From positions 124,001 to 188,000 of the IMG/VR virus record IMGVR_UViG_3300029911_000001: 64,000 nt of DNA. One strand, given 5' to 3'. Shown one piece after another: positions 2,198 through 34,800 of the stretch; within the stretch, counting starts at the first letter, position 1, and every line of letters starts with the position of its first letter. The notes beneath the pieces are model-generated. The model saw only the letters and a list, made by a program, of their open reading frames with translations, was not told the origin of the DNA and ran no database searches. The position numbers and the translations under genes were made by a program.

Positions 2198-5100
2198 TTA
2201 CCTACCTCTACCTGTAGCTCCAGTGTCTGTTAAGGTTGCAGTTGGAGATAGGTTAGGTGACGGCTTGAACGCATTCTCTCCCCCCGTAGTTTGGGTGCTG
2301 TCTGTAGCATTAGGTGCCGACATACTGACGTAACCAACGTTCTGCGTGTTGTGATTTACTACGTTGATAAGACGCTTAAGATCAGCCGCTGGCGGAGACG
2401 GCGCTGAAACCGCTTTCGCATTAGCCTCCGCGACAGGGTTGTGGGTTGTCGGTAAAAACCCTCCTGTCCCTGAGTCATATTTATACCCCCCTGATTGTGA
2501 CTGGAATAAACTGATTTGCTTAGAATCAGACTTGACCCCCCCTGCCATTGAATGCAATGCCCCCTCAAGATACTTCCTTATCGTATCGTCGGTCTTATCC
2601 CCAGTACCAGAGAGAATTCTATCGTTTACGTTATCCCATCGTGTTTTCAACTGCGTAGCTGTTAGCCCGGTTTGGGGGTCTTTCCAGTCCTTGTTCTTCT
2701 CAATAATTTTATCCACCAACTGCTCATCCATCTGAGTTAGGGGGTCGTTCTTAGCTCTTATTGCCGCTGCTTCATCTGCCCCCCCTCCTCCCCATTTTTT
2801 GTTAATGATGTCGAGGATACCCATGATAGGACGACCTAGTTCCGACGTGATAGCACCACGGATGTCCTTCAAGATATCTTCAGTGCTTCGGGTAGCTTCA
2901 GCGATACCGGCGATTTTCTCAGCCTGTGCTGTTGTTGTCTCCAGATGGCGAGATGCAAGAGATTTGTTGACGAGGTTGTTCTTGTCGAGCATGTCGGCAA
3001 GCTTACCAGAGTCCATACTACTGGATATCCCTTTCACCAGTTTGTCAGGGTCTATTCCTTGAATCTGCTTTAAAGCGAACCCTTTGATGGGAGTATAACC
3101 AGCTTGCTTAAGAAAGTCCGAGTAAAACTTATCTATATCCTCTGACTTCATACCAGCGGTGGCCTCTGGGGACAACCCTTTGCGAATCTCGTCAACATAA
3201 GAAGAGGTTATCTCGTTAATTCCCGCCCTAGTATCCATAGGCTTACCGTCGTAACCGTACACTTTAGAAACCTGTGATACCACAGCGGCGTTATCCACAT
3301 TAAGGGACGATGGGTCTTTCAAGAAGGCACCTAATGATGTACCTCCTTTAGAAAGTCCTTGAGACAACGCTTCTATGTTTTGGACAATCTTCTGAATGGG
3401 GTTACTTGTAGTAGCTCCCTGTAAGAACGATGCTCCAATAGGATCACTTGACTTTAGGGCGTCAGCGTTCATTCGAGCAATCTGAGCTTGCTTCAGAGCG
3501 CCACCTAATTGCTCTGTCTTTTGTGTCCCCATATCACCCGTCACGTTACCTCTAAACCGATTCACTGCGGCTTCCATATCCTTCGGTTCATTCAAGTCCA
3601 ACCCGTCTAGAATCTCTTTTCGCTTAGAGGGCATAACCTCTGTGATAGCTTCGTCCAAAGTCTTAGCAAAGTTATCTGATGACTGCTGAGCGAGTTTGTC
3701 CATCGCATCCCCAAAACCACTGCGGCTGGAACCCGACATTCCCATCAGAAGTGCGCTGCGCTGCTCGTCGGTCTTCTCTCCCTTACCAGTGAGGGATTCA
3801 AGATTATCCTTCATCTGTTCCGCTGTATCGGTTCCTGTAGAACCCATGAGACGCAGTACAGTGGTCACTGTGTCAATGGACTTACCCATGTTGTCAAAAT
3901 GACTGGATACATCATCAATGAGTTCGAGGTATTTGGTGGTAGAGAAGCCAGCAGCCCGAATATCCTTACCAATGGTCTGGAAGAACTGCTGAGTACCGGA
4001 TAGAGTCATCTTGTATTGCTGCATCATCTTGATAGTTTGCTTCGTACCCTCCACGTCAGTCAGACCTATTTCACGTGCCTGCTTGAAAGCGATGGTGGCT
4101 ATGTCGCCCACATCACTTGGTAATTGATTCCCCTTAGTTTGGGTTGCAAGGGAGGCTATACTAAGACCAGACTCATTCATTGTCTGAGCCACACTCATCT
4201 GTCGTTCAGTGCTGATACCATACCGATTAAGACCCCATGCACGAAGGTTGTTTTTCACATTACCGAGAGCTTCAAGCCCTGTCTGATCCCCCGTGAAAAT
4301 ACCCCCTTTTCCAAGATTTTTCTCATACTCCTTGTTTTGGTTGGCAACAGCGTCGAATGTATCCTTGAGAGCAATCGCAGCAGCCGCAGCAATCCCTACA
4401 GACCCGCCTAACATTTTAGCCTCCATACCCCCTACCCCACCTTCGGCTGCACCTATGGCACCTTCTACGGCTGAACCCCCGCCAGCCCCCACCATATCCC
4501 ACCCCTTACTGGCAAGTCTACCCGTACCCCCCAACATACGGTTGACGAGGAACTTATCTATACGGGAGCCTTCAGGACCAACAAATTCATCGGTGGCCAT
4601 ATTACGAGCCGCTTTGTGAGCAGAAAGTTTGACAGGGTCAATCTGCCCGTCAGTCCCAATAAGTTCAGGGTATTGCTTAGCAACCTTCCGCGTCACCGCA
4701 TCCACCTTTGCTGCAAAGGTGGCTTTGTTATTTTGGGTTTTCTCTTCTCTAGCTCTCTTGACATCATGGGCAGCTTGAGCGGTTGCGACCACCTTGTTCA
4801 TACGCCCATTCGATTTTCCGAGAGCACCATTCAGTGACAAAATCGCCTTATGTATACCTCCGAGTTTGACGTTACCTACACTTCTCGCAAACTGGTCAAA
4901 GCTACCATTAATCGCGTCCGCCGACTTCTTAATCTCACCAAGAAGTTGGAGGTTGCCTTTGAGAGGCTTATTCATGTCGCCTGTTTTATCGCTGAGCTTG
5001 GTTATGGATTGTTCACACTCGTGGATAGTCCTGCGGAGAAAGACCATCTGGGCGGCGTTAGTTTTGCCGTTCTTAACTATATCCTCACTCACAGTTTTCA

Positions 5101-19066: not shown

Positions 19067-19142
19067 GCGGGGGTAGATTAGCGGCTAAATCATCGCCCTT
19101 ACAAGACGACTATCGTGGGTTCGAGTCCCACCCTCCGCACCA
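19067..19142 (+). tRNA. tRNA-Val(UAC)
   Basis: Cloverleaf, loop CT-TAC-AA, encoded CCA. Confidence 0.9.
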
Positions 19143-19172
19143 AGATTCGCAGTATTAGATGTTCAGATGTAT

Positions 19173-19247
19173 GCGGGATTAGTTCAGTGGTAGAACGCTT
19201 CCTTGCCAAGGAAGAGGTCGAGGGTTCGAATCCCTCATCCCGCTCCA
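19173..19247 (+). tRNA. tRNA-Gly(GCC)
   Basis: CTTCC-TT-GCC-AA-GGAAG; CCA. Confidence 0.95.
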
Positions 19248-19309
19248 AAAGTTTAGAGTCTCAGTGACTCGATGATGTATAGGTATTTGACAATTTAGGT
19301 TTGAATTTT

Positions 19310-19383
19310 GGGGTCGTCGTTCAGTGGGAGGACAACACGCTTGCACCGTGTCAACAGGGGTTCGAATCCCCTCGGCTCCACCA
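19310..19383 (+). tRNA. tRNA-Ala(UGC)
   Basis: ACACG-CT-TGC-AC-CGTGT; G3.U70; CCA. Confidence 0.9.
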
Positions 19384-19391
19384 AAAACGCT

Positions 19392-19652
19392 CTAAATGTG
19401 GTAACGTCCACGTTGCAACGTCCCAGATTTGCAAATTGGGTGCACAAAGGGGATGAAGCCCGTCTTTGCTTGTAGCAACTCGGTGGAATTGTGGTTTTTG
19501 TTATAATTGTTTGAGGAGTGGTTGGTACATTTTCTACACCATGAATTAAGGGTTATAGTAGTACCATTCTTATTCCTTCTGGTACGAACCCCAAAATACT
19601 CCTTTGAGGCGGGATGGTTGGTGTTACATTTAGAACACAGCTTGGATTCCAT
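19392..19652 (-). pseudogene. Antisense Zn-finger ORF, probable HNH-type endonuclease remnant
   Basis: ATG with RBS GGAG; KLCSKC...WCRKC; no complete nuclease domain. Confidence 0.45.
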
Positions 19653-19701
19653 TGCTTCTCCTAAGTTAGCTAATACAATGGAATCCAATAGTTGAAAAGA
19701 T

Positions 19702-20030
19702 TGCACCAGAGACTTCGGACAATCGCGACGTGAGCGCAATACTCACTTCGAGGAAATTCGGGGCATCATAGAACAACCTAGTGGGTAACGCCCACGCAGT
19801 GGAACATCACTGACGACAAGTGCCACAGAGACGAGCCTCTTCAGTGAGGAGTGAAACGCGGTAAACTTCTAGGTGATGCAACTTCAAATAGGCCGACAGG
19901 TGCTGTTCGTACCGTTATGAATCGGCGGGTTGAGGGCTAGAGCGTTGTGGTAACACAACGTCGAGACGAATGATTGTCGAACCACCGAAAGGTGGGGAAC
20001 AGAACCCCGGTTATAGAAGTCTCTGGTGCA
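19702..20030 (+). ncRNA. rnpB: RNase P RNA (bacterial type A-like)
   Basis: 15-bp P1 TGCACCAGAGACTTC/GAAGTCTCTGGTGCA; GAGGAAATTCGGGC (19750), AAGTGCCACAGA (19818), GTGAAACGCGGTAAAC (19851), ACAGAACCCCGGTTA (19999). Confidence 0.92.
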
Positions 20031-20040
20031 GTAAAGTTTT

Positions 20041-20157
20041 GAGTGCTCGTACCTCAGTGAACGCCGATGCGATGTTTGCCATCGGGGCGGTAGAGGACGG
20101 CCTACCCGAGCAGTTAGCGGATGGAAGAAGTCATGGGTTCGAACCCCATCGGCACTC
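20041..20157 (+). ncRNA. tRNA-like RNA with a hairpin inserted in the D-loop and no clear anticodon arm
   Basis: D-stem CCTC/GAGG, T-arm ATGGG-TTCGAAC-CCCAT, acceptor-like GAGTGC/GCACTC. Confidence 0.5.
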
Positions 20158-20271
20158 AAATAAGATGGACGACACCTGTCCAAGGACGTTCCACATGTGA
20201 GTGTGGTGTAGGCAAGCGGATATGCTCCGAAGCTGAGTCCAGTGGTGTGACGCCGGGGAGAGCACCGGGCT

Positions 20272-20345
20272 GCGGGATTAGTGTAGTGGTAACACGTCAT
20301 CCTTCCAAGTTGAAGTCAGGGGTTCAAGTCCCCTATCCCGCTCCA
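20272..20345 (+). tRNA. tRNA-Gly(UCC)
   Basis: Loop CT-TCC-AA; CCA. Confidence 0.92.
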
Positions 20346-20438
20346 AGTTCAAGCCATCCCAATACTGACGCACAAAGGCGGGTACGGTTCTAGGGTAATG
20401 GTGCGGGAGGATAACCTAAACCGCAAGTTTAGATTCAT

Positions 20439-20515
20439 GCACCGATAGCCAAGACGGTAAGGCGACAGATTGCAACCCTGTTAATGCGGGAGTTCGATTC
20501 TCCCTCGGTGCTCCA
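20439..20515 (+). tRNA. tRNA-Cys(GCA)
   Basis: Loop TT-GCA-AC; U73; CCA. Confidence 0.92.
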
Positions 20516-20524
20516 AGTTTCAAA

Positions 20525-20600
20525 GGGCGATTAGCTCAGTTGGGAGAGCGTTTCCATGGCATGGAAAAGGTCAAGGGTTCGAGCCCCTTATTGTCCACCA
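20525..20600 (+). tRNA. tRNA-Ala(GGC)
   Basis: TTTCC-AT-GGC-AT-GGAAA (A32-U38); G3.U70; CCA. Confidence 0.93.
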
Positions 20601-20879
20601 GTTTAGAAGAGGATGGAAAACTGGAAAGTTCCCGGTAACGGTGACACAATCCGGCTCACTGGCTCTCTAAAAGACACTGCACGTCTCTAAATGGCAGCGT
20701 AAGCGGCACGACACGTCCACCAAGTTTGGGGTAGCACTAGCGCACACCGCATATCAGGCGCGTGTCGGCAATAGGCTTGCAGATAGAAGTAAAGCTGCGG
20801 AACACAGTTTGAACTCGTGGTACGGACACAGTTTCGTCGTCAGCCGGTGAGCTAACACCGCTGGTGCCACGCGAAGTTT

Positions 20880-20954
20880 GGTGCTGTATCATAATGCCAA
20901 TGAACTCCCCTGTCGAGGGAGCTTATGAGGGTTGAACTCCCTTCAGCACCGCCA
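20880..20954 (+). tRNA. tRNA-Asp(GUC), atypical D/T loops
   Basis: CTCCC-CT-GTC-GA-GGGAG; G73; D-loop lacks GG; T-loop TTGAACT. Confidence 0.75.
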
Positions 20955-21014
20955 TTTTTTCAACTACAGAACCCTTATATGTAAGTCACTTCTGATACAT
21001 ATAAGGGTTCGATA

Positions 21015-21635
21015 ATGGCTAAAAAGAAAGAGAAAGAAGAAGCAATCAGGTTACGTGTTGAACACCGTCTCTCATTGGAAGTTATTTCTAAACAGTTAGG
21101 TGTATCTCAGAGTAGTTGCTCCTTATGGTTGAGAGGTTACCCTCTATCGGAGCAAGAAAAGAGCACTCGCAAACCCCCCTCTACGAAAGGTATTGCGCGT
21201 AAGATTCGGGGGGATAGGTCAAAGTTTTCTAATGTAGTTGACGGGCAGGAACTTACAAAATCTCGTAAGGGGAGAATAGCTGAATCTGCAATTCTATTTC
21301 GGTTGGCTCTTCATGGTCTGACCCCCTACGGTTCCCCGTTTGATGGTGATAAGACCGATTGGGTAGTAGAGAATGCACAAGGTAGAACTATGAAGGTACA
21401 AGTGAGGTGGGCGCGTGAGGCTAGAAAAGGGCTACCTTTTATCTCACTTCGAATTTCGGATGGGAGGCACAACACTCGTCGGTACACGGAAAATGAATTT
21501 GACTTTATTGTGGCTTACGACCTGTACACAGATACGGCTTATGTATTTAATCAAGAGGATGTAAGGAACAATACCGCACTTATCGCAGTATCAGAGGAGA
21601 GGGCGGAGAAGTGGCAACAGTTACTGGATTTTTGA
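21015..21635 (+). CDS. Free-standing PD-(D/E)XK endonuclease with N-terminal HTH
   Basis: KGRIAE...TDWVVE...KVQVR...FDFIVAY pattern; inserted in the tRNA array. Confidence 0.75.
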   Translation: MAKKKEKEEAIRLRVEHRLSLEVISKQLGVSQSSCSLWLRGYPLSEQEKSTRKPPSTKGIARKIRGDRSKFSNVVDGQELTKSRKGRIAESAILFRLALHGLTPYGSPFDGDKTDWVVENAQGRTMKVQVRWAREARKGLPFISLRISDGRHNTRRYTENEFDFIVAYDLYTDTAYVFNQEDVRNNTALIAVSEERAEKWQQLLDF

Positions 21636-21648
21636 TGAGGAAACAAGT

Positions 21649-21852
21649 ATGTGTCAAGCGTTTACACCGGACATGCGGAACTTCGATGAGAAGCCGTACA
21701 CACCGGATGAGCAGCGAGTAGTCAAGTACCTAGTTGAACTCACCAATGGAACGATTGGCGGCGGTGACGACCCTATCGGGTTCCTCATCGCGAGTCATGC
21801 AACGCTTTCTGACTTGAATGTGAAGCGTTGTCGAGAGGAAGCACATGGTTGA
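21649..21852 (+). CDS. Small hypothetical protein
   Basis: ATG with RBS GAGGA. Confidence 0.55.
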   Translation: MCQAFTPDMRNFDEKPYTPDEQRVVKYLVELTNGTIGGGDDPIGFLIASHATLSDLNVKRCREEAHG

Positions 21853-22009
21853 CTTTGAAGCAAACGGTTGGCGTAAGTTGACAGCAGAAGAGCAGGAAGG
21901 CATTCGTGAGTTTGAGCGAGTGATGAAGGAAGAGACCATACCTGCCATCGTGAAGACTATCCGTCTCCGTCAGGAATTGGCTAATGAATATCGAGGAATT
22001 TTGTACTAA
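21845..22009 (+). CDS. Small hypothetical protein (54 aa), not in the ORF track
   Basis: MVDFEANGWRKLTAEEQEG...; RBS GAGGA; overlaps the previous stop. Confidence 0.55.
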   Translation: MVDFEANGWRKLTAEEQEGIREFERVMKEETIPAIVKTIRLRQELANEYRGILY

Positions 22010-22014
22010 TGTTT

Positions 22015-22091
22015 GGGGATGTAACTCAGTCGGTCAGAGTATTCGCCTGTCGAGCGAAAAGTCGCGGGTTCGAACCCCGTCATCCCCGCCA
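22015..22091 (+). tRNA. tRNA-Asp(GUC)
   Basis: TTCGC-CT-GTC-GA-GCGAA; canonical; CCA. Confidence 0.95.
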
Positions 22092-22096
22092 AGTGT

Positions 22097-22200
22097 GAGA
22101 TGTAGTGTCAAGGTGTGGCGTTTGTATACGAACGTGAGCATCATTAGAACGGGGCCTTGTTGCGGCTCTGGTGTGGGTGAAAATCCCGCCGTCTCCGCCA
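22097..22200 (+). ncRNA. Degenerate tRNA-like unit
   Basis: GAGATG/CGTCTC acceptor-like, ends GCCA; T-like arm GTGGG-TGAAAAT-CCCGC; no 7-nt anticodon loop. Confidence 0.4.
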
Positions 22201-22271
22201 GTTTCAAATGTTGCAGCACGGTTTCAGTGAGTCCTGAAATGGCTGAAGGTTGGAGTAAGCTGATTGAATCT

Positions 22272-22346
22272 ACACCCGTAGCTCAGAGATAGAGCGTCTC
22301 CTTGACGTGGAGAGGGTCGGGGGTTTAATTCCCTCCGGGTGTACCA
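22272..22346 (+). tRNA. tRNA-Val(GAC)
   Basis: TCTCC-TT-GAC-GT-GGAGA; CCA. Confidence 0.92.
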
Positions 22347-22374
22347 AAGCAGGAGAGTTTGAAGTTACCAGAGT

Positions 22375-22432
22375 CGGGATGTAGCTCAGTGGTAGAGCCT
22401 AAAAGTCGCAGGTTCGATTCCTGCCTTTCCTA
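22375..22432 (+). pseudogene. tRNA-like unit lacking the anticodon arm
   Basis: Canonical D arm GCTC-AGTGGTA-GAGC joined by CTAAAAGTC to canonical T arm GCAGG-TTCGATT-CCTGC; weak acceptor stem. Confidence 0.7.
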
Positions 22433-22644
22433 TACGACGCTCTGGTGGACTGAAAGGCGGGAAGCGTATCGTGCTCGTATTCACATTGCGCGTACCGCCC
22501 AAGTTTATTAATGATGAGTTTCAAGTTCGAGAGTTGGAACCAGCAGCGGAACATATAGCAGCCCTCACAGCTATCGCGTGCTAGGTAAGGGCAAGGACGA
22601 AGAGGCAGCATGGAAAGATGCTGTCCGTCGCAAGAAACAGATTT

Positions 22645-22723
22645 GGGGCAAGGGACTGCCGGGGGTGGTCACCTCATTCGCAATGAGGAATTCAGCGGGG
22701 TTCAAGTCCCCGTTGCTCCACCA
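22645..22723 (+). tRNA. tRNA-Ala(CGC), atypical D arm
   Basis: CCTCA-TT-CGC-AA-TGAGG; GGGGCAA/TTGCTCC with G3.U70; CCA. Confidence 0.85.
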
Positions 22724-22731
22724 AAAGTTTC

Positions 22732-22806
22732 GGGGTTATAGCTCAGAGGGAGAGCACCGCATTTGCAATGCGGGGGTCGAGATTTCAAAATTCTCTAACT
22801 CCACCA
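22732..22806 (+). tRNA. tRNA-Ala(UGC), second copy
   Basis: CCGCA-TT-TGC-AA-TGCGG; G3.U70; CCA. Confidence 0.88.
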
Positions 22807-22826
22807 CTTTATTAGTCAAAAGTTTC

Positions 22827-22904
22827 GGGCGGTCTGGAATAAGAGTTTCAGACAGGCTGCACATAGAGGCAGAAGGGTGAGTTCGAATCCCTTCACGTCC
22901 ACCA
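22827..22904 (+). ncRNA. Degenerate tRNA-like unit with Ala-type acceptor end
   Basis: GGGCG/CGTCC-A-CCA (G3.U70); GTTCGAAT in an enlarged T-loop; anticodon unresolved. Confidence 0.45.
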
Positions 22905-22921
22905 ATTTTGAGGTTGATTGA

Positions 22922-23179
22922 ATGAAGTTCACACGTCGTCAGTTCTTCGCAGGGCTCCCGGTATTCATCATGCCGGGGTGGATGAAGGCGATAGCCTCAT
23001 GGTTCCAGCCTGAGGTCGCCGTAGTAAAGGCTCCTCTAATCAAGGGCTCGACCCAACTAAATGATGTCCTGCCAAAGCGTGTGATGGTACCAACGTTCGA
23101 AATAGTTTCGTGTCCGACAATCTTGCTCAAGGAAATCAAGGAGCGTAGGTTCAGGATACAAAGTGGGCCGGTAGCATAA
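22922..23179 (+). CDS. Small protein with twin-arginine-like N-terminus
   Basis: MKFTRRQFFAG; RBS GAGG. Confidence 0.55.
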   Translation: MKFTRRQFFAGLPVFIMPGWMKAIASWFQPEVAVVKAPLIKGSTQLNDVLPKRVMVPTFEIVSCPTILLKEIKERRFRIQSGPVA

Positions 23180-23243
23180 TGGGAATGCACATTCCTTGCG
23201 GCGAGTAACCGCACCCACCCGGCTCCAGTTTGAAAGGAGCTTC

Positions 23244-23426
23244 ATGGCTAAGTACACAGTACGTAACAAGGAAGGGCACCTTCTCGGAAGGACTGATAGC
23301 CCTGAGGTTTTGGTAGAAGAGATTTGCGAAGTATGTGAGAAGCAAGGAATTATTTACCACGTACACCCCGAGTCGGAAGAGCATAAAGGGTCTCCTAGCT
23401 TTCGACCAATGAAGTTTAGCAGATGA
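23244..23426 (+). CDS. Small hypothetical protein
   Basis: ATG with RBS AAGGAG. Confidence 0.55.
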   Translation: MAKYTVRNKEGHLLGRTDSPEVLVEEICEVCEKQGIIYHVHPESEEHKGSPSFRPMKFSR

Positions 23427-23452
23427 AATGGAAAAGCACGAAGGTTAAGTTT

Positions 23453-23527
23453 GGCCCTGTCCTCCAACGGTCAGGAGAGTGGGTTCTCAACCCGACAACA
23501 AGGGTTCAACTCCCTTCAGGGCCACCA
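23453..23527 (+). tRNA. tRNA-Glu(CUC)
   Basis: Loop TT-CTC-AA; GGCCCTG/CAGGGCC; CCA. Confidence 0.88.
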
Positions 23528-23534
23528 GTTTTAT

Positions 23535-23609
23535 GGCGCATTCGTTCATTGGTTAGGACCGGTGTTTTTCAAGCACCAGAAGAGGTTTCGATTACCTCAT
23601 GCGCTACCA
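23535..23609 (+). tRNA. tRNA-Glu(UUC)
   Basis: GGTGT-TT-TTC-AA-GCACC; CCA. Confidence 0.88.
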
Positions 23610-23992
23610 ATTTCGCTGGGAGGTCGGTGTGGACTCAGGCGACTCGCTGCAACCGAGTAGGCGTTGCGGGAGATATGCGAGGGAAAGATTGATCTTCCTG
23701 TCAGAACATCGGCAGTTGAAGTGGGCACCGGGGCTGAAGGGTCATCGCTAGAACAGGGTGGCCCTTCAGCAAAGTCTGCCGACCATTTGATACAATAGCT
23801 GGATGAGACGAGGCTACCAATGAACTGTACTAAGTGTGGTGAATCAGCCCTCGGAGTAGCTCTTGATGGACTACCTTACTGTCATCGCACAGAGTGTATT
23901 TTATGGAAGGTGGAATTGCAACGGTATCGGGATTTGCAAGCTCTCCCTTTTCCAGCACCGCAGCGACCGTTTGCAAAAAGTTTGGTGTTTAA

Positions 23993-24068
23993 GCGGGATT
24001 AGCTCAGTTGGTAGAGCGTTTCCTTCCCAAGGAAAATGTCGCGGGTTCGAGTCCCGCATCCCGCTCCA
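23993..24068 (+). tRNA. tRNA-Gly(CCC)
   Basis: TTTCC-TT-CCC-AA-GGAAA; canonical; CCA. Confidence 0.95.
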
Positions 24069-24086: not shown

Positions 24087-24794
24087 ATGAGCTTAGCATT
24101 GTACCCCACCGGCCAGCTTAGATTCTGGACGGAACAAGAAATCTCTCTTCGCGATGGTCTCATCCATCGTCTCTTCCATGTTGTGAAAGCTCCGCTTCAG
24201 ACTCTGAACAAGGCGTGGCGTTTCGAACGTGTTGAAGGCCCCCTACTCACTCCTGCCGACTACATCAGCCCAGCCTACACCGAGGATGACCTATGGGTAA
24301 CCAAGGGTCTAATCGCGGCTCAGGGTGTCGCCATGAGAGCGGAGACCACCGCATCCAGTTACATCTACGCCAAGCATCTGATGTCTCAGGAAGGCGGTAG
24401 CAATAAGCTACCTCTCTGCGTGTGGCAGTCAGGCAAGAGCTTCCGCAAGGAAGAGAGCGATGGTGCATCCGCATCCCGGCTCCGCTTCTTCGAGTTCTAT
24501 CAGCTTGAGTTCCAGTGCATCTACAGCAAGACCACCGGAGCCGATTACGTCGCCCCGGTCACATCTCGCGTGATGAAGGAACTTGAACTCATCACGGGGC
24601 ACAAAGCCCGTCTCGTTCGCTCCGACCGTCTCCCCTCTTATAGTGAAGCCACCTTCGATGTTGAAGTAGACTTCAACGGGCACTGGCGTGAGATGTGCAG
24701 CATTTCACAACGCACCGATTTCGAGGGTGCCAAGGTGTTGGAAGTCGCCATCGGTCTCGACCGGCTGGTAGCAGTCATCGGGGGTGGTGTCTAG
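24087..24794 (+). CDS. Minimal class II aaRS catalytic core, alpha2-type GlyRS-like, no anticodon-binding domain
   Basis: MRAETT, QSGKSFRKE, RFFEFYQLEFQ, LPSYS, EMCSISQRTDF, LEVAIGLDRL. Confidence 0.78.
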   Translation: MSLALYPTGQLRFWTEQEISLRDGLIHRLFHVVKAPLQTLNKAWRFERVEGPLLTPADYISPAYTEDDLWVTKGLIAAQGVAMRAETTASSYIYAKHLMSQEGGSNKLPLCVWQSGKSFRKEESDGASASRLRFFEFYQLEFQCIYSKTTGADYVAPVTSRVMKELELITGHKARLVRSDRLPSYSEATFDVEVDFNGHWREMCSISQRTDFEGAKVLEVAIGLDRLVAVIGGGV

Positions 24795-27082: not shown

Positions 27083-27742
27083 ATGAGACCGAATATTCCA
27101 AAACTAGCCGCCTCCCCTATCCTCACCCTGAAGACGAAGCCGAAGTTCCGCAACGAACTGCTTCAGTCGCAGACTTGGCCTCAAGATGTGAATTATCTGC
27201 GAGATACCTATTTAGACCTCATCATGATTTGGGAAGAACTAAAGGAGCCCTCGACGGATAAGCTCCTCTTCGAGAGGACTCAGCCCCGGCTACAGGAGCT
27301 TGTGGACGGGCTCACTGACGTTTCCACCAAGGTTCCGTACCTTTCAGCTATCAAACGCCTCATGGTCAACGCACGTCATGACATGAACATCGCCAACAGC
27401 TATGGACGGGCTGGTGACTTTGCTTCAGCCACTATGTACCAACATTACTCTCTGACTAGGGTTCACGATGTGCTGGAGTCGATGACTCGCTTTGGTAGCG
27501 TCCCCTCCCGCCAGCGTCTGGCCTACGGTTACGACATCAGCGGAGAGGTGTTTGATGGTTCAGGGGAACTCGCCAACCGTGAGAACGAAAAGAATCTCAA
27601 CGACACGGCTGAACCGAAAGATCACCACGAGACTCCACCTAACCCAGCCAACCTGATGCGGGATACGGACGCCGACAAGGAGTTTCCTGAGTTGAGCGAG
27701 AAGAAAAATGACAAGGTCATTTGGCCTCCGAGGAGACGATGA
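27083..27742 (+). CDS. Hypothetical protein
   Basis: 219 aa ORF. Confidence 0.7.
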   Translation: MRPNIPKLAASPILTLKTKPKFRNELLQSQTWPQDVNYLRDTYLDLIMIWEELKEPSTDKLLFERTQPRLQELVDGLTDVSTKVPYLSAIKRLMVNARHDMNIANSYGRAGDFASATMYQHYSLTRVHDVLESMTRFGSVPSRQRLAYGYDISGEVFDGSGELANRENEKNLNDTAEPKDHHETPPNPANLMRDTDADKEFPELSEKKNDKVIWPPRRR

Positions 27743-27743
27743 G

Positions 27744-28730
27744 CTATCGCAGGTATACTGCAAACACAATATCGTCGTCTCCTGTGGAGACTTCCATTGT
27801 CACTGTGTTTGTTGAGAGGGTGTAGTATCCTATTTCCCCCACCCCCACTCCACCAATTACGGGAATCTGAAACACACCATTCAAGTAGAGACCTATCATA
27901 AGGGTAGGGCTATAGGTCAAAGTGAACACGGTACCCGGACTAGACCCTGATGGGGGCTCAACTACAAGCTTCGCGGCGATTGCGGCGCTCAGGTTAGATT
28001 CCGTAACAAGGGAGCCTATATCACTTAGGTCAGTTGAGGCTAGTTGTCCTACGGTAATAGCCCCACCCACCGTTGACTGTTTTAGAACTTGGTGAGGACC
28101 TCCCGTCCCTGCCAAGTTGGAACTCGTCCCCCCTTGGTCTACGGCACAGGTTCCGCTTAGATCACTGAAAGACGATGCTTCACCTCCTGCGGTATAGAAC
28201 GAGGGGGTGAAGGGGAACGTGAGATACCCGTCCAAGGAACCTACTACTTGAGAGATAAAGCCCAGCGTCTGGACGAAATTAGGGGATGTTGGTTTTACCT
28301 TAGTCACACTTCCGGCTGTAGTTGGACTAAGGTAGACGGGTGACCCTATATCACTCGGGGAGAACCCAGATACAAACTCCATCGTCGTAAGCCCCTGTGT
28401 ACAAACGACAATAAAATCCCCAGCTTCTGCTGGAGCAGTAACAAACCCCAACGCGGGAAGGTTACTCAGGCTTGAGGCACTAGCTAATTGAGCGTATACC
28501 CCGCTAATAGAGTCGATGGTAGTGTAGTAGAGGTTTACTAGGCTCCCAGAAGGGAGGTCAGTGGCGGCGATAGCTGACACTGGTGCTCCAGTAAAACTAG
28601 AGTCAATTTCACCATTGACATTCAGTACAACCGGTGACCCCTCACCCCCTGCTCCTGTGTACGACGACACACCGGGGGTTATATCAATGAGCCCCGTAAC
28701 TTGATTAAAAACGCAAATTTGTGTAGCCAT
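27744..28730 (-). CDS. Probable virion decoration/fibre-associated protein
   Basis: Gly/Ser/Thr-rich beta-type sequence; ALGFV...G.PVYLS...G.VTK motif of cement/fibre-like proteins. Confidence 0.5.
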   Translation of the reverse strand: MATQICVFNQVTGLIDITPGVSSYTGAGGEGSPVVLNVNGEIDSSFTGAPVSAIAATDLPSGSLVNLYYTTIDSISGVYAQLASASSLSNLPALGFVTAPAEAGDFIVVCTQGLTTMEFVSGFSPSDIGSPVYLSPTTAGSVTKVKPTSPNFVQTLGFISQVVGSLDGYLTFPFTPSFYTAGGEASSFSDLSGTCAVDQGGTSSNLAGTGGPHQVLKQSTVGGAITVGQLASTDLSDIGSLVTESNLSAAIAAKLVVEPPSGSSPGTVFTLTYSPTLMIGLYLNGVFQIPVIGGVGVGEIGYYTLSTNTVTMEVSTGDDDIVFAVYLR

Positions 28731-28854
28731 CGGTCGTATCCTCGTCTCAGGTATCCCAAATAAGGGGTCTATCCATGAGCTTGATAGCCAAAATTATTTT
28801 GTGACTACCGACGCCTATAAGTATAGGGGCATCTCGCCTCGTTATGGGAGTCAC

Positions 28855-31800
28855 ATGTTTAAGTTGTTTCAAAAATTCGGGATTCTTGTTACCTTGGTTT
28901 TCGCCTTTGGTTGCTCTATAGGACAGGCACAAATAAATCCAGAACAAATTCGGTGGCCTCTGCTCACAGGGACAGGTGTTCCTACCCTCTCCTGCTCGTC
29001 CGTTAACTATGGGCAACCTTACCAGAACACAGCAGTTACACCGAATACTTACTACACATGCGGCACAGATGGTTGGCAGATACGTATATCCCTCGGGCCT
29101 AAAGTGAATGCGACGAGCGTAGCCTTTGGCGCGGCATCATCCTGCGCAAACACTGCTGATCCAACAATGACACTGGATTCAACCTGCGCTATTAGGGCGG
29201 CGATTGCTTACGTTTATGCCCACGGTGCCAATGGAGTCTACCCAGCATTATATCTACCCGTTGGCAACTACAAGACTACCGCTGAGATACGAATACCCTG
29301 CGACGTATGGCTGGAGGGTGACGGGGTAACGGCAACCGTTATTTCCTTGACCAACAATGCAGCAAACGGAATTACCGTGTACGGCGATAACTCCGGCTCC
29401 GGTGATGCGTGGCAGTGCGTCGGCGGAATGCATGGTCTTGGTATTACCGCCATTGGCGCTCATCTTTACACCGCCGACCAATTGGAGATTGTCGGGTCTA
29501 CTGCATACACATTGAGGGATGTACTGGTACAGGGCGGCGGTGGCAGAGGTATCAATGTCACTGGCGGCTCAGAACGCTTGGACGCTGAAAATATCTTCAT
29601 CAACACAGTTCGCTGGCCTATGCTGTGGAAAGGTAACGAGAACCATCTCCGAAAATTGAACATTGCAGACCCCGGAAACTCCTCGGACAACTGGTGCTTT
29701 GCACAGGGAAATTGCGTTACCACACACACTTTCCCCAACTTTAATTGGAGCCTTCAGCAGACTCTAGTTTCAGCGGTTGGCTCAGGAACCCGCGCCTCCT
29801 ATGTTGTCACTGACACGGGGGGTGCCGGTTCTACTTTGGGTGTCTCCCCCATCGGCATTGGGCAATGGTTCACTGTTTCTGGAGTCACTGGAACGACCGG
29901 ACTGAATGGTGTGTTTCAGGTCGCATCGGCGACGAATGGCACCGTGACAGGTGGCTGCGCCGCGAACAGGTGCTACACCATTACTGCGGTAAATTCGACA
30001 AGTGGAACCGGCACCGGACTTGGCTCCGCAACGTTCCAACCGACTATTGTTGCAGATAGAAACGCCGCCGTTTATGCCTCCGGCTCAACATTCAAGATTG
30101 ATGGAGGATCGATCAAATCGCTAGAGTCATCTGGATGCTTTGATATTGGTAGCACGTTCGGAAGCACAATCGCTAACATTTACTGCGAGGGCTATCCGGT
30201 GAACGGCCAGCCCCACGTAAACTCATCAGTTACTGAGGGTAACCTCCCTGCTGAAACAACTACAACTGCCAGTCTTGGAGCTTCTGCGACAACCGTCACC
30301 GTGGTGGATACCTCGTGGTTCCCTAACTATGTGCAGACGGCATCTGACGCTAATAGTGCAGATATAATACAAGGAAAAATTGCCCCTTGCGACTACATCG
30401 AGCCACCAAACACCGGCTACAATGTGCAATCTGCCTGCGCTCCAACTGGCGTGTTGAAAGGCATGTGGGAAGCAGTCCAGATAACGATGACATCGACAGG
30501 TGCCCTGCTACAGCGGTGCCAGTCTGGGTCTACGGTAACGTGTACTGCCTATACGAGCGGACCTGTATGGCCTTCTGGCTCTCTGATTGCCAACGGACCT
30601 CCGGGAAACTATTCCTACCTCAAACTGGACACCGACCATTTTAATGCAATTGATGAGCCGGGGGCTAACTGGGCTGCGTATTGCAACGATCAATCATCTT
30701 TTATATGCGGAGAAATCATTGGTGGTGGTATTGAGAATGGTCTCACAACCGGGAGTTCTGGGTCTACGCTGGGAAGGCTTCAGCAAGCCCAAATCTTGTT
30801 CGACAATGATGAGTGGTGGGGCGGTATAAATTCGGCATCGCCGGGAAGTTCCTACTATGGCGACGGAACAATCAAAGCTGTAGGGCTTGGCATCGTCGCG
30901 CAAGCTACGGGAAGCACGTTCGGAAATGGGTATGCGGCGGATTCAAATGCTGTCAATGGGAAATTCACCGATGGCACAGCCAATAACGTCAATGACTCAG
31001 CACCCGGATTCGTCAATGTTCAATCGGCTGATACCTATTACCCTTCCTCTGAGTACAACAATCTCAGCAATGGCATGATCTTCAGCGCTTCGAGCGGTCT
31101 CTTCCGTAAAAACTTGAATGCCTACGGAGACCCCATTACTGGAAACAATCCGGGCGCGGGGTCGAATGGCTACAACAATGGAGCAGAGGTCGCAAACTCG
31201 ACTTGCACTTACGATACTCCGCTGACTTCAGGTACGCACTCGCTGAATCGCTGGTGTTTCGTGGGGGGACCAGGCAATAGTGGCACAGCAGCCGGTGTTG
31301 AATATGACACCTACAATACCGGGTCGTCAATATGGGTGACTCAGTTCAAAATAGACGGCACAGGAGCCATCACATTTGGGGGAGTTCCGACCTTTACAGA
31401 TGCAATTTTCCAAGCCCTACACATGGCTGCACCGGGGGATAAGGTTTATTTGGGCGATCCCGGCAACTGGCTTGAACGCGACAACACACTAAGCGGGGCA
31501 ACTCATTTTGCCGCACCGGGGTTTGACTTTGACAATAATGGTTCAGGTTCTCCACTAAACATCATGGACGGGGCTGGTGGCACATATCACGGGTACCTCT
31601 GCCTCAACTTGGATTCGTGTATCTCTAGAAATGGAAGCTCTAATCAGTTTCACTTTGGAAGCGGAGCCTATGGAGCCAGTGACGGAGCACTCTTTGCAGC
31701 CAACGCCACCTTCGGCGGCACGCTAACCGCGTTGAACGGGAGTATAAACTCCGTGATGAATGGAGCTACAGCAGAGTTTGGGATGAGTTCGTATCTCACA

Positions 31801-34800
31801 GCACCGTGTACTGCGACCGTAGCCAACACATCGCACGTTGTCACTATTCTCAGCGGATGCACGTTCCCTAGCCCGATGACAGGGTACGTGTTTCATTTGG
31901 GCGACAGTGTGTCAGGTTCCTTGGATGGCACACTGACCTATCTGTCGCCCACGACCGCCACGATGAATGTCGCGTCTACTTGGACTTCCAGCAGCGGGAT
32001 CAGCGCGACCGTGAACGCCGGAGGTACTGGCTATGCGGTCGGTGATACCGGGACAGTCAATGGCGGAAACAGCAACGCACGGTATTGGGTGCAATCCGTT
32101 TCGGGAGGTGTAGTCACTGGAATTTACATGAACAGCGGTGGGTCTGGATATACAAGTGCAACGGGAGTTGCGACTGCAACGGGAGGCATTCAGCCCGGAA
32201 GCGGCACGGGCCTTACACTCAATACCACCGCAGCATTGACACCGGAAACGCTCTATTTTGGCCCTGATAATTGCACATCGGCAAATGCTTGGTTCGCCGC
32301 CGCAAGTGGAGGAAGAGGTACTCTATCTCCGGGTGTTTATATGTCGTCCTGTCCACTTCTCCAAGGCAGTGCAAATTCATTTTTCATCGAGGGTACAACC
32401 AAGACAAATACCATCCTTGTCGATGCAGACTCTTCATCGCACCCTGATTTTATCGGAGTCGGGAATAACGGCTCCAACTCTGTTTCACACATCGCTAATA
32501 TAAGCGCGGTCGGAAACAAGAATACCACCCGTGGCTGCATCTCGATCTTTGGCCCAACGGATCACACATCGCAAGACTTCTCCTGCTATGATTCGGGCGC
32601 AGCATCCCTATACCTGAACAATGCCGTTTCAGCCAATATAAATCAGTTCTCTTCCGCCCCCTCGAATACTTCGATTGTGCAGCCGGTGAATTGCGTCAAC
32701 TACGTAGCCAGTGGCCCGTCTGAGTTTCACAGTTTGACGTGCGAAGGTGCGTCTGGGTACTCGATCAACAATACTGGACAAATGACGATCACCGCCAGCC
32801 AGATTGATTATGGGTTGCAAGGCCAACTTTACAACAGCAGTACTGGTTACGTGTACATCAACGGCGGGACTCTACTTGGATGTGAGCTGACCACATGCGC
32901 TAATGGAGTGACCAATTATGGCGTAGTAAATGTTGAGGATGGAGGGGTGTCAGTCTCCTATCACGGATATTCTGGCTCGATCTTCTATGGCTCGAATGTT
33001 GCGCTCGATGGTCTAAACTCTACCTTTGTGTTTGATTCTGGGTCGCTATGCACAATCGCCGGGTTAAGACTTGGACTAAATGGGATCACAGACAATGCAG
33101 GATGCGCCATCGCCGGACCAACTGTAAATGAGAGCACCGGAGTTGGGACTGTAGACTATCCAACGTCGCAATCGTTGCAAACGGGAATTTACGGCAATCA
33201 ACTAATAATGGCTTCCGGTCCTCTCGCCTTTAGATATGGCTGCGCTACTTATGGTAATTCTTCATGCAACGTGACTCCAATGGCACAGGTGCCGCTTGCC
33301 GCATCGACCACATGGGCGATTCAATTTCAAGGGCAGTGGAACACTGACACTACAGTTCCATTCATCAAGACCGTGACTTATGCCAGTCCTACATTCACGG
33401 TTGCAGGACAGACGGTAACATGCAAGCAGGCTACCACGAATTTCAATACCACTCGCTCCGGTCAGTTTGTCTGCTATATTGCTCCTTCATCCATCGGTCA
33501 GGTTGGATTTACGGGGTCGTGGATTATCTATCCGAACGGAATGAATACGCCGACAGGACTCGGTGCCCCTTATTGTGCTGCCGGGATATGCAACTCTACT
33601 GGCACAGCGTGGGGTTCCAGTTATGGAATCGTGGGCTCAGGGTCAAATGTAGTTCTGGCAACGTCTCCAACCCTCCAAAATAGTTTGACGGTCACTAATG
33701 CAGGTAACGTGTCTTTGACACTGACAGATACAGCCACTGGCACCATCAGCAACACCGAGTTGCTAGGAGATGGTTCGGTAAATCACTACGACGACACAGC
33801 AGTTGTCAATTACTTTGATTATGCTAGTGGCGTTTCCAACCTCTATCTATCCACTAATCAAACTACCACGACGTTTCCAAATACGTTCAATGCATTCCCG
33901 CATGGGCTTTATGCGGGAAGCACTAACCAGTTCCAGATTGATGCCAGTGGCAACGTGACAGCACCCTCTGTCAATGTGTCAGCCACAAACTACCCATTAT
34001 TTGGTAACATCCCCGGAGTCGGGAATGTGTGGTCCGCTGTGAATAGTAACTGCAAACTTTCGCAGTTGTCTGGCGGGTCGGGTGGTTACACTGATGGAGG
34101 GTACTGCTCCACACAACAATTCCTTAGCACTGTTCCCGGGTGGAACGATCTTGGAACTATTGGTGCTTATCTTCCAGCCGCGCAGAGTATTACGATGAAC
34201 AACTACTCAACTGGAATTGAGTCAGTGTTGGCTATTCAAGTAAACTCCCCGGCGGGAGGAGACCAGAATGGCATCGACTTCCAAGATCACGTTCGCAACG
34301 CTCTGAATCATGGAGGAGATCAAGGCCAGTCTGACCTTCAAATTCAGTCCTACGAGGGAGGAGAACCCACAGGGACAGTAACATCAGTCACACCTGTAGC
34401 TTCTGGAGTTCAAGTTGCACTAACATGCTCTGCGAACTGTGACCAGATGGGAATCATGTCTGGCCCACTGGTCGATATGACAGAGGCAATTCCTGCCACG
34501 GTTACTTACGTCAGCACATCGGGCGGTTTGGCTACGGTAACGTCCAGCAATACTGTTCCCGTTTCGACATCGGGTACGCTCGCCAGTGCTGCCAATGCTC
34601 AATGGTCAAACGCGACAACTTATCCTTCGGGCATCATCGTTCTATACATAGGAGCGGCGTACTACCAAAGTTTGCAAAACACAAACGTTGGGCATGAGCC
34701 GGATACCTCTCCTAGTTGGTGGACACTAGTATCTCCGCCTAGCGGGAGGCTATCCTCGAACATTGTAACGTGGAACATGAACACCGGCACTACTCTGACA

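Follow-up and report, generated by a model that had tools for sequence, protein, structure and literature searches.

A class A RNase P RNA gene lacking P13 and P14 in the tRNA gene array of a huge phage from peat

RESULTS

An RNase P RNA gene lies within a phage tRNA gene array

The stretch of DNA analysed here (the window) is 64,000 bp long and comprises bases 124001-188000 of the 231,108-bp IMG/VR virus record IMGVR_UViG_3300029911_000001, which CheckV rates 74% complete. ARAGORN and Rfam place a same-strand array of 14 tRNA genes at window positions 19067-24068 (+), in which three tRNA genes (Val-UAC, Gly-GCC and Ala-UGC; 19067-19383) are followed, after a 318-nt gap, by an RNase P RNA gene at 19702-20030 (+) and then by eleven further tRNA genes (Gly-UCC, Cys, Ala, Asp x2, Val, Ala x2, Glu x2 and Gly-CCC; 20272-24068). 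A search with cmscan against Rfam 15 matches the class A bacterial RNase P RNA model RF00010 (RNaseP_bact_a) to 19707-20029 on the + strand with 179.6 bits against a gathering score of 100 (E 2.3e-56); the match is not truncated and covers model positions 1-367 of 367. With the whole of helix P1 included the gene is 329 nt long. Within clan CL00002 only the best overlapping match is kept, and that is RF00010 rather than the class B model RF00011; the class A elements P6, P16-P17 and P18 are also present. A first-pass annotation made from the sequence alone had called this feature a type A-like RNase P RNA inside a phage tRNA operon, and that identification and setting are borne out.

The surroundings of the gene have several notable features. 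An 11-bp hairpin with a 21-nt loop (19644-19686) lies 15 nt upstream of P1; it has no U-run and so is not a typical terminator, but it may be a processing signal. Ten nt after P1 there is a tRNA-like element (20041-20158, +) with a 7-bp acceptor stem, a canonical T arm (UUCGAAC loop), an irregular 70-nt middle part with an extra hairpin and no encoded CCA. Neither Rfam nor ARAGORN calls it, and ARAGORN with intron search gave no convincing tRNA there. Thirteen of the 14 tRNAs in the array read GNN codons (Val, Ala, Asp, Glu, Gly), and tRNA genes in the record are sorted by the first letter of the codon; another array holds Thr, Ile and Gln and a third holds Tyr, Leu, Pro, Met and Phe. A 206-aa ORF inside the array (21015-21635, +) has an N-terminal helix-turn-helix-like stretch, with weak matches to sigma-70 region 4 and transposase HTH, and a C-terminal phrog_5018 domain of unknown function. 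Directly after the last tRNA (Gly-CCC), a 235-aa protein of unknown function (24087-24794, +) consists only of a class II aminoacyl-tRNA synthetase catalytic core and is closest to GlyRS (NF003211, E 5e-14); it belongs to Atlas clusters that are 86-97% viral. A few kb downstream of the array there is a single open reading frame of 2824 aa (28801-37275, +).

Since RNase P RNA is a universal bacterial gene, we considered whether host contamination, a chimeric assembly or the flank of a prophage might account for its presence; indeed, some IMG/VR matches to the canonical motif lie at the contig ends of short prophage-like records and may be host flanks. However, the gene lies 143 kb inside the record, which encodes DnaB-like and DnaC-like proteins, ribonucleotide reductase, a helicase and a lytic transglycosylase, and which contains 32 tRNA genes in all. 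ARAGORN also predicts, outside the window (G000:C1, complement 71374-71774 and 67323-67396 of the record), a permuted (two-piece) tmRNA with the tag ANSNVALPIAA and a tRNA with anticodon CUA, a possible amber suppressor. The same locus recurs at 99.8-100% identity in another IMG/VR contig and in two metagenome contigs, the same junctions appear in four independent assemblies, and the locus is present in 24 peat metagenome runs from 24 studies; a chimeric assembly is therefore very unlikely. In addition, the RNA is only 48-56% identical to the bacterial RNase P RNAs sampled (trimmed core alignment), its specificity-domain signature was not found in the 401 Acidobacteriota genomes searched, and its relatives lie next to homologous phage genes (below). 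We consider it very improbable that the gene is bacterial DNA rather than a phage gene.

The RNA retains the catalytic core but lacks P13 and P14

We mapped the helices from the cmscan alignment and by hand. P1 is a perfect 15-bp helix (19702-19716 with 20016-20030) that extends to 17 bp if one G.U pair is allowed. P2, P3 (9 bp with one C-U mismatch), P4, P5, P6, P7, P8, P9, P10/11, P12, P15, P16, P17 and P18 are also present. The P6 pseudoknot is formed by GAAC (19771-19774) with GUUC (19905-19908) in the P17 loop, and P18 (19942-19961) is an 8-bp hairpin with a GUAA tetraloop. The single-stranded core motifs are in place: GAGGAAA before P4, ACAGAA before its 3' strand, GCAA in J5/15, AGACGAAUG in J18/2, and CACAGA and GUGAAA in the specificity domain. 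The P15-P16-P17 arm (19882-19935) carries the L15 motif CGGGUU (19926-19931), which contains the GGU that in bacterial enzymes pairs with the tRNA 3' CCA. This fits the substrates, since all 14 tRNAs of the array, and 15 of the 16 in the window, encode CCA, and twelve of the 16 leaders end in U, the base bacterial RNase P prefers at position -1.

The RNA departs from the textbook class A form in three respects. P13 and P14 are absent, with 43 model positions replaced by one nucleotide; P12 is a 14-nt hairpin (19836-19849) that replaces 28 model positions; and an extra 5-bp hairpin with a GAAA loop (19982-19995) occupies the P19 position between the P2 3' and P4 3' strands. The reduced core of the specificity domain (19824-19867) thus consists of J11/12 CACAGAGACGAG, the P12 hairpin, and AGUGAAAC running straight into the P11 3' strand. 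The RNA nonetheless keeps P7-P12 and the J11/12 and J12/13 modules, and so differs from the specificity-domain-less RNase P RNAs of the archaeal type T kind.

The long-range P4 helix is also unusual. Its 5' strand region reads GAGGAAAUUCGGGG (19750-19763) where the consensus is GAGGAAAGUCCGGG, the strand itself being AAUUCGGGG (19755-19763, with the bulged U at 19758, preceded by the conserved GAGG), and its 3' strand reads CCCCGGUU (20005-20012) where the consensus is CCCGGCUU. The helix is kept, with the same length and the same bulged U: A-U, A-U, U.G, bulged U, C-G, G-C, G-C, G-C, G-C. One pair is flipped (C-G to G-C) and one is changed on both sides from G-C to a U.G wobble; the suggestion in the first-pass annotation that the 3' strand compensates for the unusual 5' strand is therefore correct. 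We scanned one genome for each of 185,579 prokaryote species for this 5' strand in its RNase P context, and of 84 matches only one is a genuine RNase P RNA, from a Peptostreptococcaceae MAG (JAWXUS010000029.1). That RNA scores 270 bits with RF00010 and has the identical P4 5' strand GAGGAAAUUCGGGGC, but its 3' strand gives U-A where the phage has U.G, it keeps P13 and P14, it shares only 56% core identity with the window RNA, and it lies outside the phage clade described below.

Related RNAs form a clade in huge phages

A scan of IMG/VR for the canonical P4 strand showed that many huge-phage contigs carry RF00010 matches inside tRNA arrays, and some of these shared the window's odd specificity domain. 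Two further scans, with motifs from P15/P18 and from J11/12, brought in the closer relatives. In total there are about 22 contigs (20-463 kb) with about 18 distinct sequences. Such motif scans miss divergent members and bias towards the chosen motifs, but the RNAs found are not rare curiosities; the first-pass annotation had called phage rnpB genes uncommon. All are in tRNA arrays and have the signature GACGAnnAGnGCnACAGAGACGAG followed after P12 by GUGAAACG, and none has P13 or P14. Among the 16 members aligned, hairpins at the P19 position are found in the window RNA and in L313, L318, L316, L042, L046 and L328 (our designations for the loci of relatives), and in none of the other nine.

In a tree with 28 acidobacterial, two other bacterial and seven other phage-borne RNase P RNAs, the 16 clade sequences form one group with support 0.978 and a long stem branch, although the bacterial sampling is narrow and the tree is effectively unrooted. 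In the trimmed core alignment the window RNA is 74% identical to its nearest relative, L313. The proteins encoded around the arrays of relatives are homologous to the window phage's proteins (30-67% identity) and map to the same part of its genome, in the same order in L313 and L318; homologues of the GlyRS-like protein lie beside the arrays of L042 and L046. The order tRNA-Cys, RNase P RNA, tRNA-Gly(UCC) recurs, and in relatives a tRNA, usually Gly-UCC, starts about 8 nt after P1. This pattern indicates inheritance within a phage lineage, not repeated capture from hosts.

No clade-type copy was found among the GenBank phages in INPHARED. BLAST of the window RNA against 50,697 INPHARED records gave no match, and a relative's RNA hit only a Salmonella genome record and two 'Acinetobacter phage MD-2021a' contigs with an ordinary, unannotated rnpB. 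The nearest cultured phage by helicase similarity, Tunturiibacter phage Tunturi_5, has no RF00010 match; the 37% identity between the two helicases is the only hint as to the host, and it points to Acidobacteriota. We examined the RNase P RNAs of that phylum. In 94 acidobacterial genomes they are ordinary, with 214-343 bits, 341-589 nt and P13 and P14 (this tally and that of the 401 genomes above each include one unpublished genome, from which no sequence was used). Some acidobacterial RNAs (L331, L333, L334) have the P4 variant GAGGAAAGUCCGAAC / ACAGAAUUCGGCUUAC and a P19 hairpin, and share both with the phage-clade member L328 and the P4 variant alone with L321, L324 and L326. Two Acidobacteriota assemblies have a second, weak, roughly 200-nt RF00010 match (G107:C250:18862-19050; G059:C375:584-792) that may be a binned phage copy.

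Structure is under selection

Near-identical copies of the locus (L017, L202 and L256) gave no covariation, and contigs from four peat runs showed only identical copies. We therefore counted base pairs in the alignment of the 16 clade members, using ten helices that align without ambiguity (52 pairs in all); P11 was left out because the window's P11 3' strand was misaligned by 1-2 nt by MAFFT. Of all cells, 96% are canonical pairs, while 500 within-column shuffles give a mean of 73% and a maximum of 76%, and sliding the 3' partner by 1-3 columns gives 34-40%. Thirty-eight pairs show changes on both sides. Since these sequences are related the shuffle control overstates significance, but the slid-partner control and the number of double changes do not depend on that. 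P4 is paired in 128 of 128 cells, a value that no shuffle out of 2000 reaches, and five of its eight pairs covary, as do 3 of 4 pairs of the P6 pseudoknot and 8 of 8 pairs of P18. At least seven different P4 strand pairs occur in the clade, each with matching strands; the U.G pair beside the bulge is shared by six members and is never U-A, and the flipped G-C pair is shared by seven.

These findings bear on whether the gene might be a decaying, non-functional relic of a captured host rnpB. Its low bit score for the family (179.6 against 214-343 in the acidobacterial genomes), the loss of P13 and P14, the non-consensus P4 and the mismatch in P3 could be read in that way. However, helices are kept through compensatory changes across about 18 diverged relatives (56-74% identity to the window RNA), the conserved single-stranded core motifs are intact, and the gene is identical across peat samples, so that we regard decay as very unlikely.

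No rnpA gene was found

The first-pass annotation had noted no recognizable rnpA-like gene in the window. The rnpA model TIGR00188 finds no match at E <= 10 anywhere in the 231,108-bp record, nor at E <= 1 in five related records, three of which CheckV rates 100% complete; in a control the model detected rnpA in 10 of 14 reference genomes. Because the window's record is only 74% complete an rnpA gene could lie in the missing part, and a very divergent or unrelated phage cofactor would escape such a search.

DISCUSSION

The best explanation of these observations, and one in which we have good though not complete confidence in the absence of biochemical or transcript evidence, is that the gene encodes a functional catalytic RNA subunit of RNase P, a reduced class A form inherited within a lineage of huge (about 100-460 kb) phages as part of their tRNA gene arrays. 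Most likely it is transcribed together with the flanking tRNAs, since all genes are on one strand with short U-rich spacers, and freed by the usual tRNA-end processing; the tRNA-like element 10 nt downstream is a probable RNase P cleavage site that would set the 3' end of the ribozyme transcript. It would then assemble with the host's RnpA protein and remove the 5' leaders of the phage's 32 pre-tRNAs, and perhaps of its tmRNA, and so keep tRNA maturation going during infection. Co-transcription, the host protein partner and the benefit to the phage are inferences, as was the proposal in the first-pass annotation that the RNA is co-induced with its substrates and borrows the host protein; they fit the gene order and the absence of a detectable rnpA. 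No promoter was identified, matches to sigma-70-like promoters and to terminators being at chance level, and all 24 runs that hold the locus are listed as DNA, although that label is itself a guess. Loss of P13 and P14 and the U.G pair next to the catalytic bulge could lower activity. Possible advantages to the phage include extra capacity for a burst of 32 tRNAs in slow-growing peat bacteria, or independence from a host RNA that is no longer made once host transcription stops.

It is possible, but unlikely in our view, that the RNA is functional in some role other than tRNA 5' maturation, for example as a decoy that ties up host RnpA and shuts down host tRNA supply, or as a processor of other phage transcripts. 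No cognate protein gene was found, the host already has its own RNase P so that the added value is not obvious, and the specificity domain, which reads the tRNA T loop, is the reduced part. On the other hand, the conserved elements are those for substrate binding and catalysis (L15 GGU, J5/15, the P4 bulge, and the J11/12 and J12/13 modules), not only the protein-contact regions, and the gene is always embedded among tRNAs whose CCA ends and U(-1) leaders suit it. Somewhat less remote, but still doubtful, is the idea that it works without host RnpA, either with an unrecognized phage-encoded protein or as RNA alone. Many conserved neighbouring proteins have no known function (for example those encoded at 27083-27742 and 27744-28730, which are shared with relatives), and the added P19 hairpin with its GNRA loop lies in J2/4, which is probably near the protein-binding face of the holoenzyme. 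However, no candidate protein was identified, bacterial RNase P RNAs need the protein in vivo, and the J18/2 and P2-P3 regions look ordinary.

Loss of P13 and P14 is itself already known. Reduced class A RNase P RNAs of Candidate Phyla Radiation bacteria lack these helices and sometimes more and score low against Rfam models, and such loss is described as 'not unusual' (PMC8172020). Those RNAs are the sole cellular copies, in genomes that also have the protein, whereas the RNA described here is a second, viral copy with its own conserved J11/12 and J12/13 signature, ACAGAGACGAG ... GUGAAACG. The genomic setting is that of the tRNA arrays and tmRNA of huge phages (Al-Shayeb et al. 2020, PMC7162821), to whose known list of substrates and factors the ribozyme would add a processing enzyme. 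The first-pass annotation stated that phage rnpB genes have been reported, but we found no report of a phage-encoded RNase P RNA in the literature searched, which did not include closed-access papers; the 2020 survey mentions tmRNA but never RNase P, and two jumbo-phage reviews have no occurrence of 'RNase P RNA'. The gene has been treated as strictly cellular and organellar, and although Rfam-based annotation of phage genomes would pick up most of these genes, the phage annotations and papers we examined do not list them. The clade offers natural experiments on how much of the specificity domain can be lost and how freely the catalytic P4 helix can change.

A broader reading, which we consider about as likely as not, is that huge phages carry their own vertically inherited and previously undescribed lineage of RNase P ribozymes, distinct from all sampled bacterial RNAs, with no P13/P14, a P19 hairpin in about half the members and an unusually variable but always compensated P4 helix, and that in related phages it has been whittled down to 207-243 nt. 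Such RNAs would make phage tRNA maturation partly independent of the host, using the host protein or none at all. Other huge-phage contigs (71-203 kb) do carry much shorter RNase P-like RNAs inside tRNA arrays: 207 nt (118.5 bits; L081:10596-10802), 243 nt (84.9 bits; L068:5635-5877), 221 nt (71.7 bits; L107:2248-2468, - strand) and 308 nt (64.4 bits; L094:1748-2055). All match RF00010 end to end, but three score below its gathering threshold; both P4 strands are intact, and most of the specificity domain is missing or replaced. If active, these would be the smallest bacterial-type RNase P RNAs known to us. Finally, in a 202-kb phage contig (L065) a group I intron (RF00028, 68.4 bits; 3325-3528, - strand) lies about 3 kb from the RNase P RNA gene.
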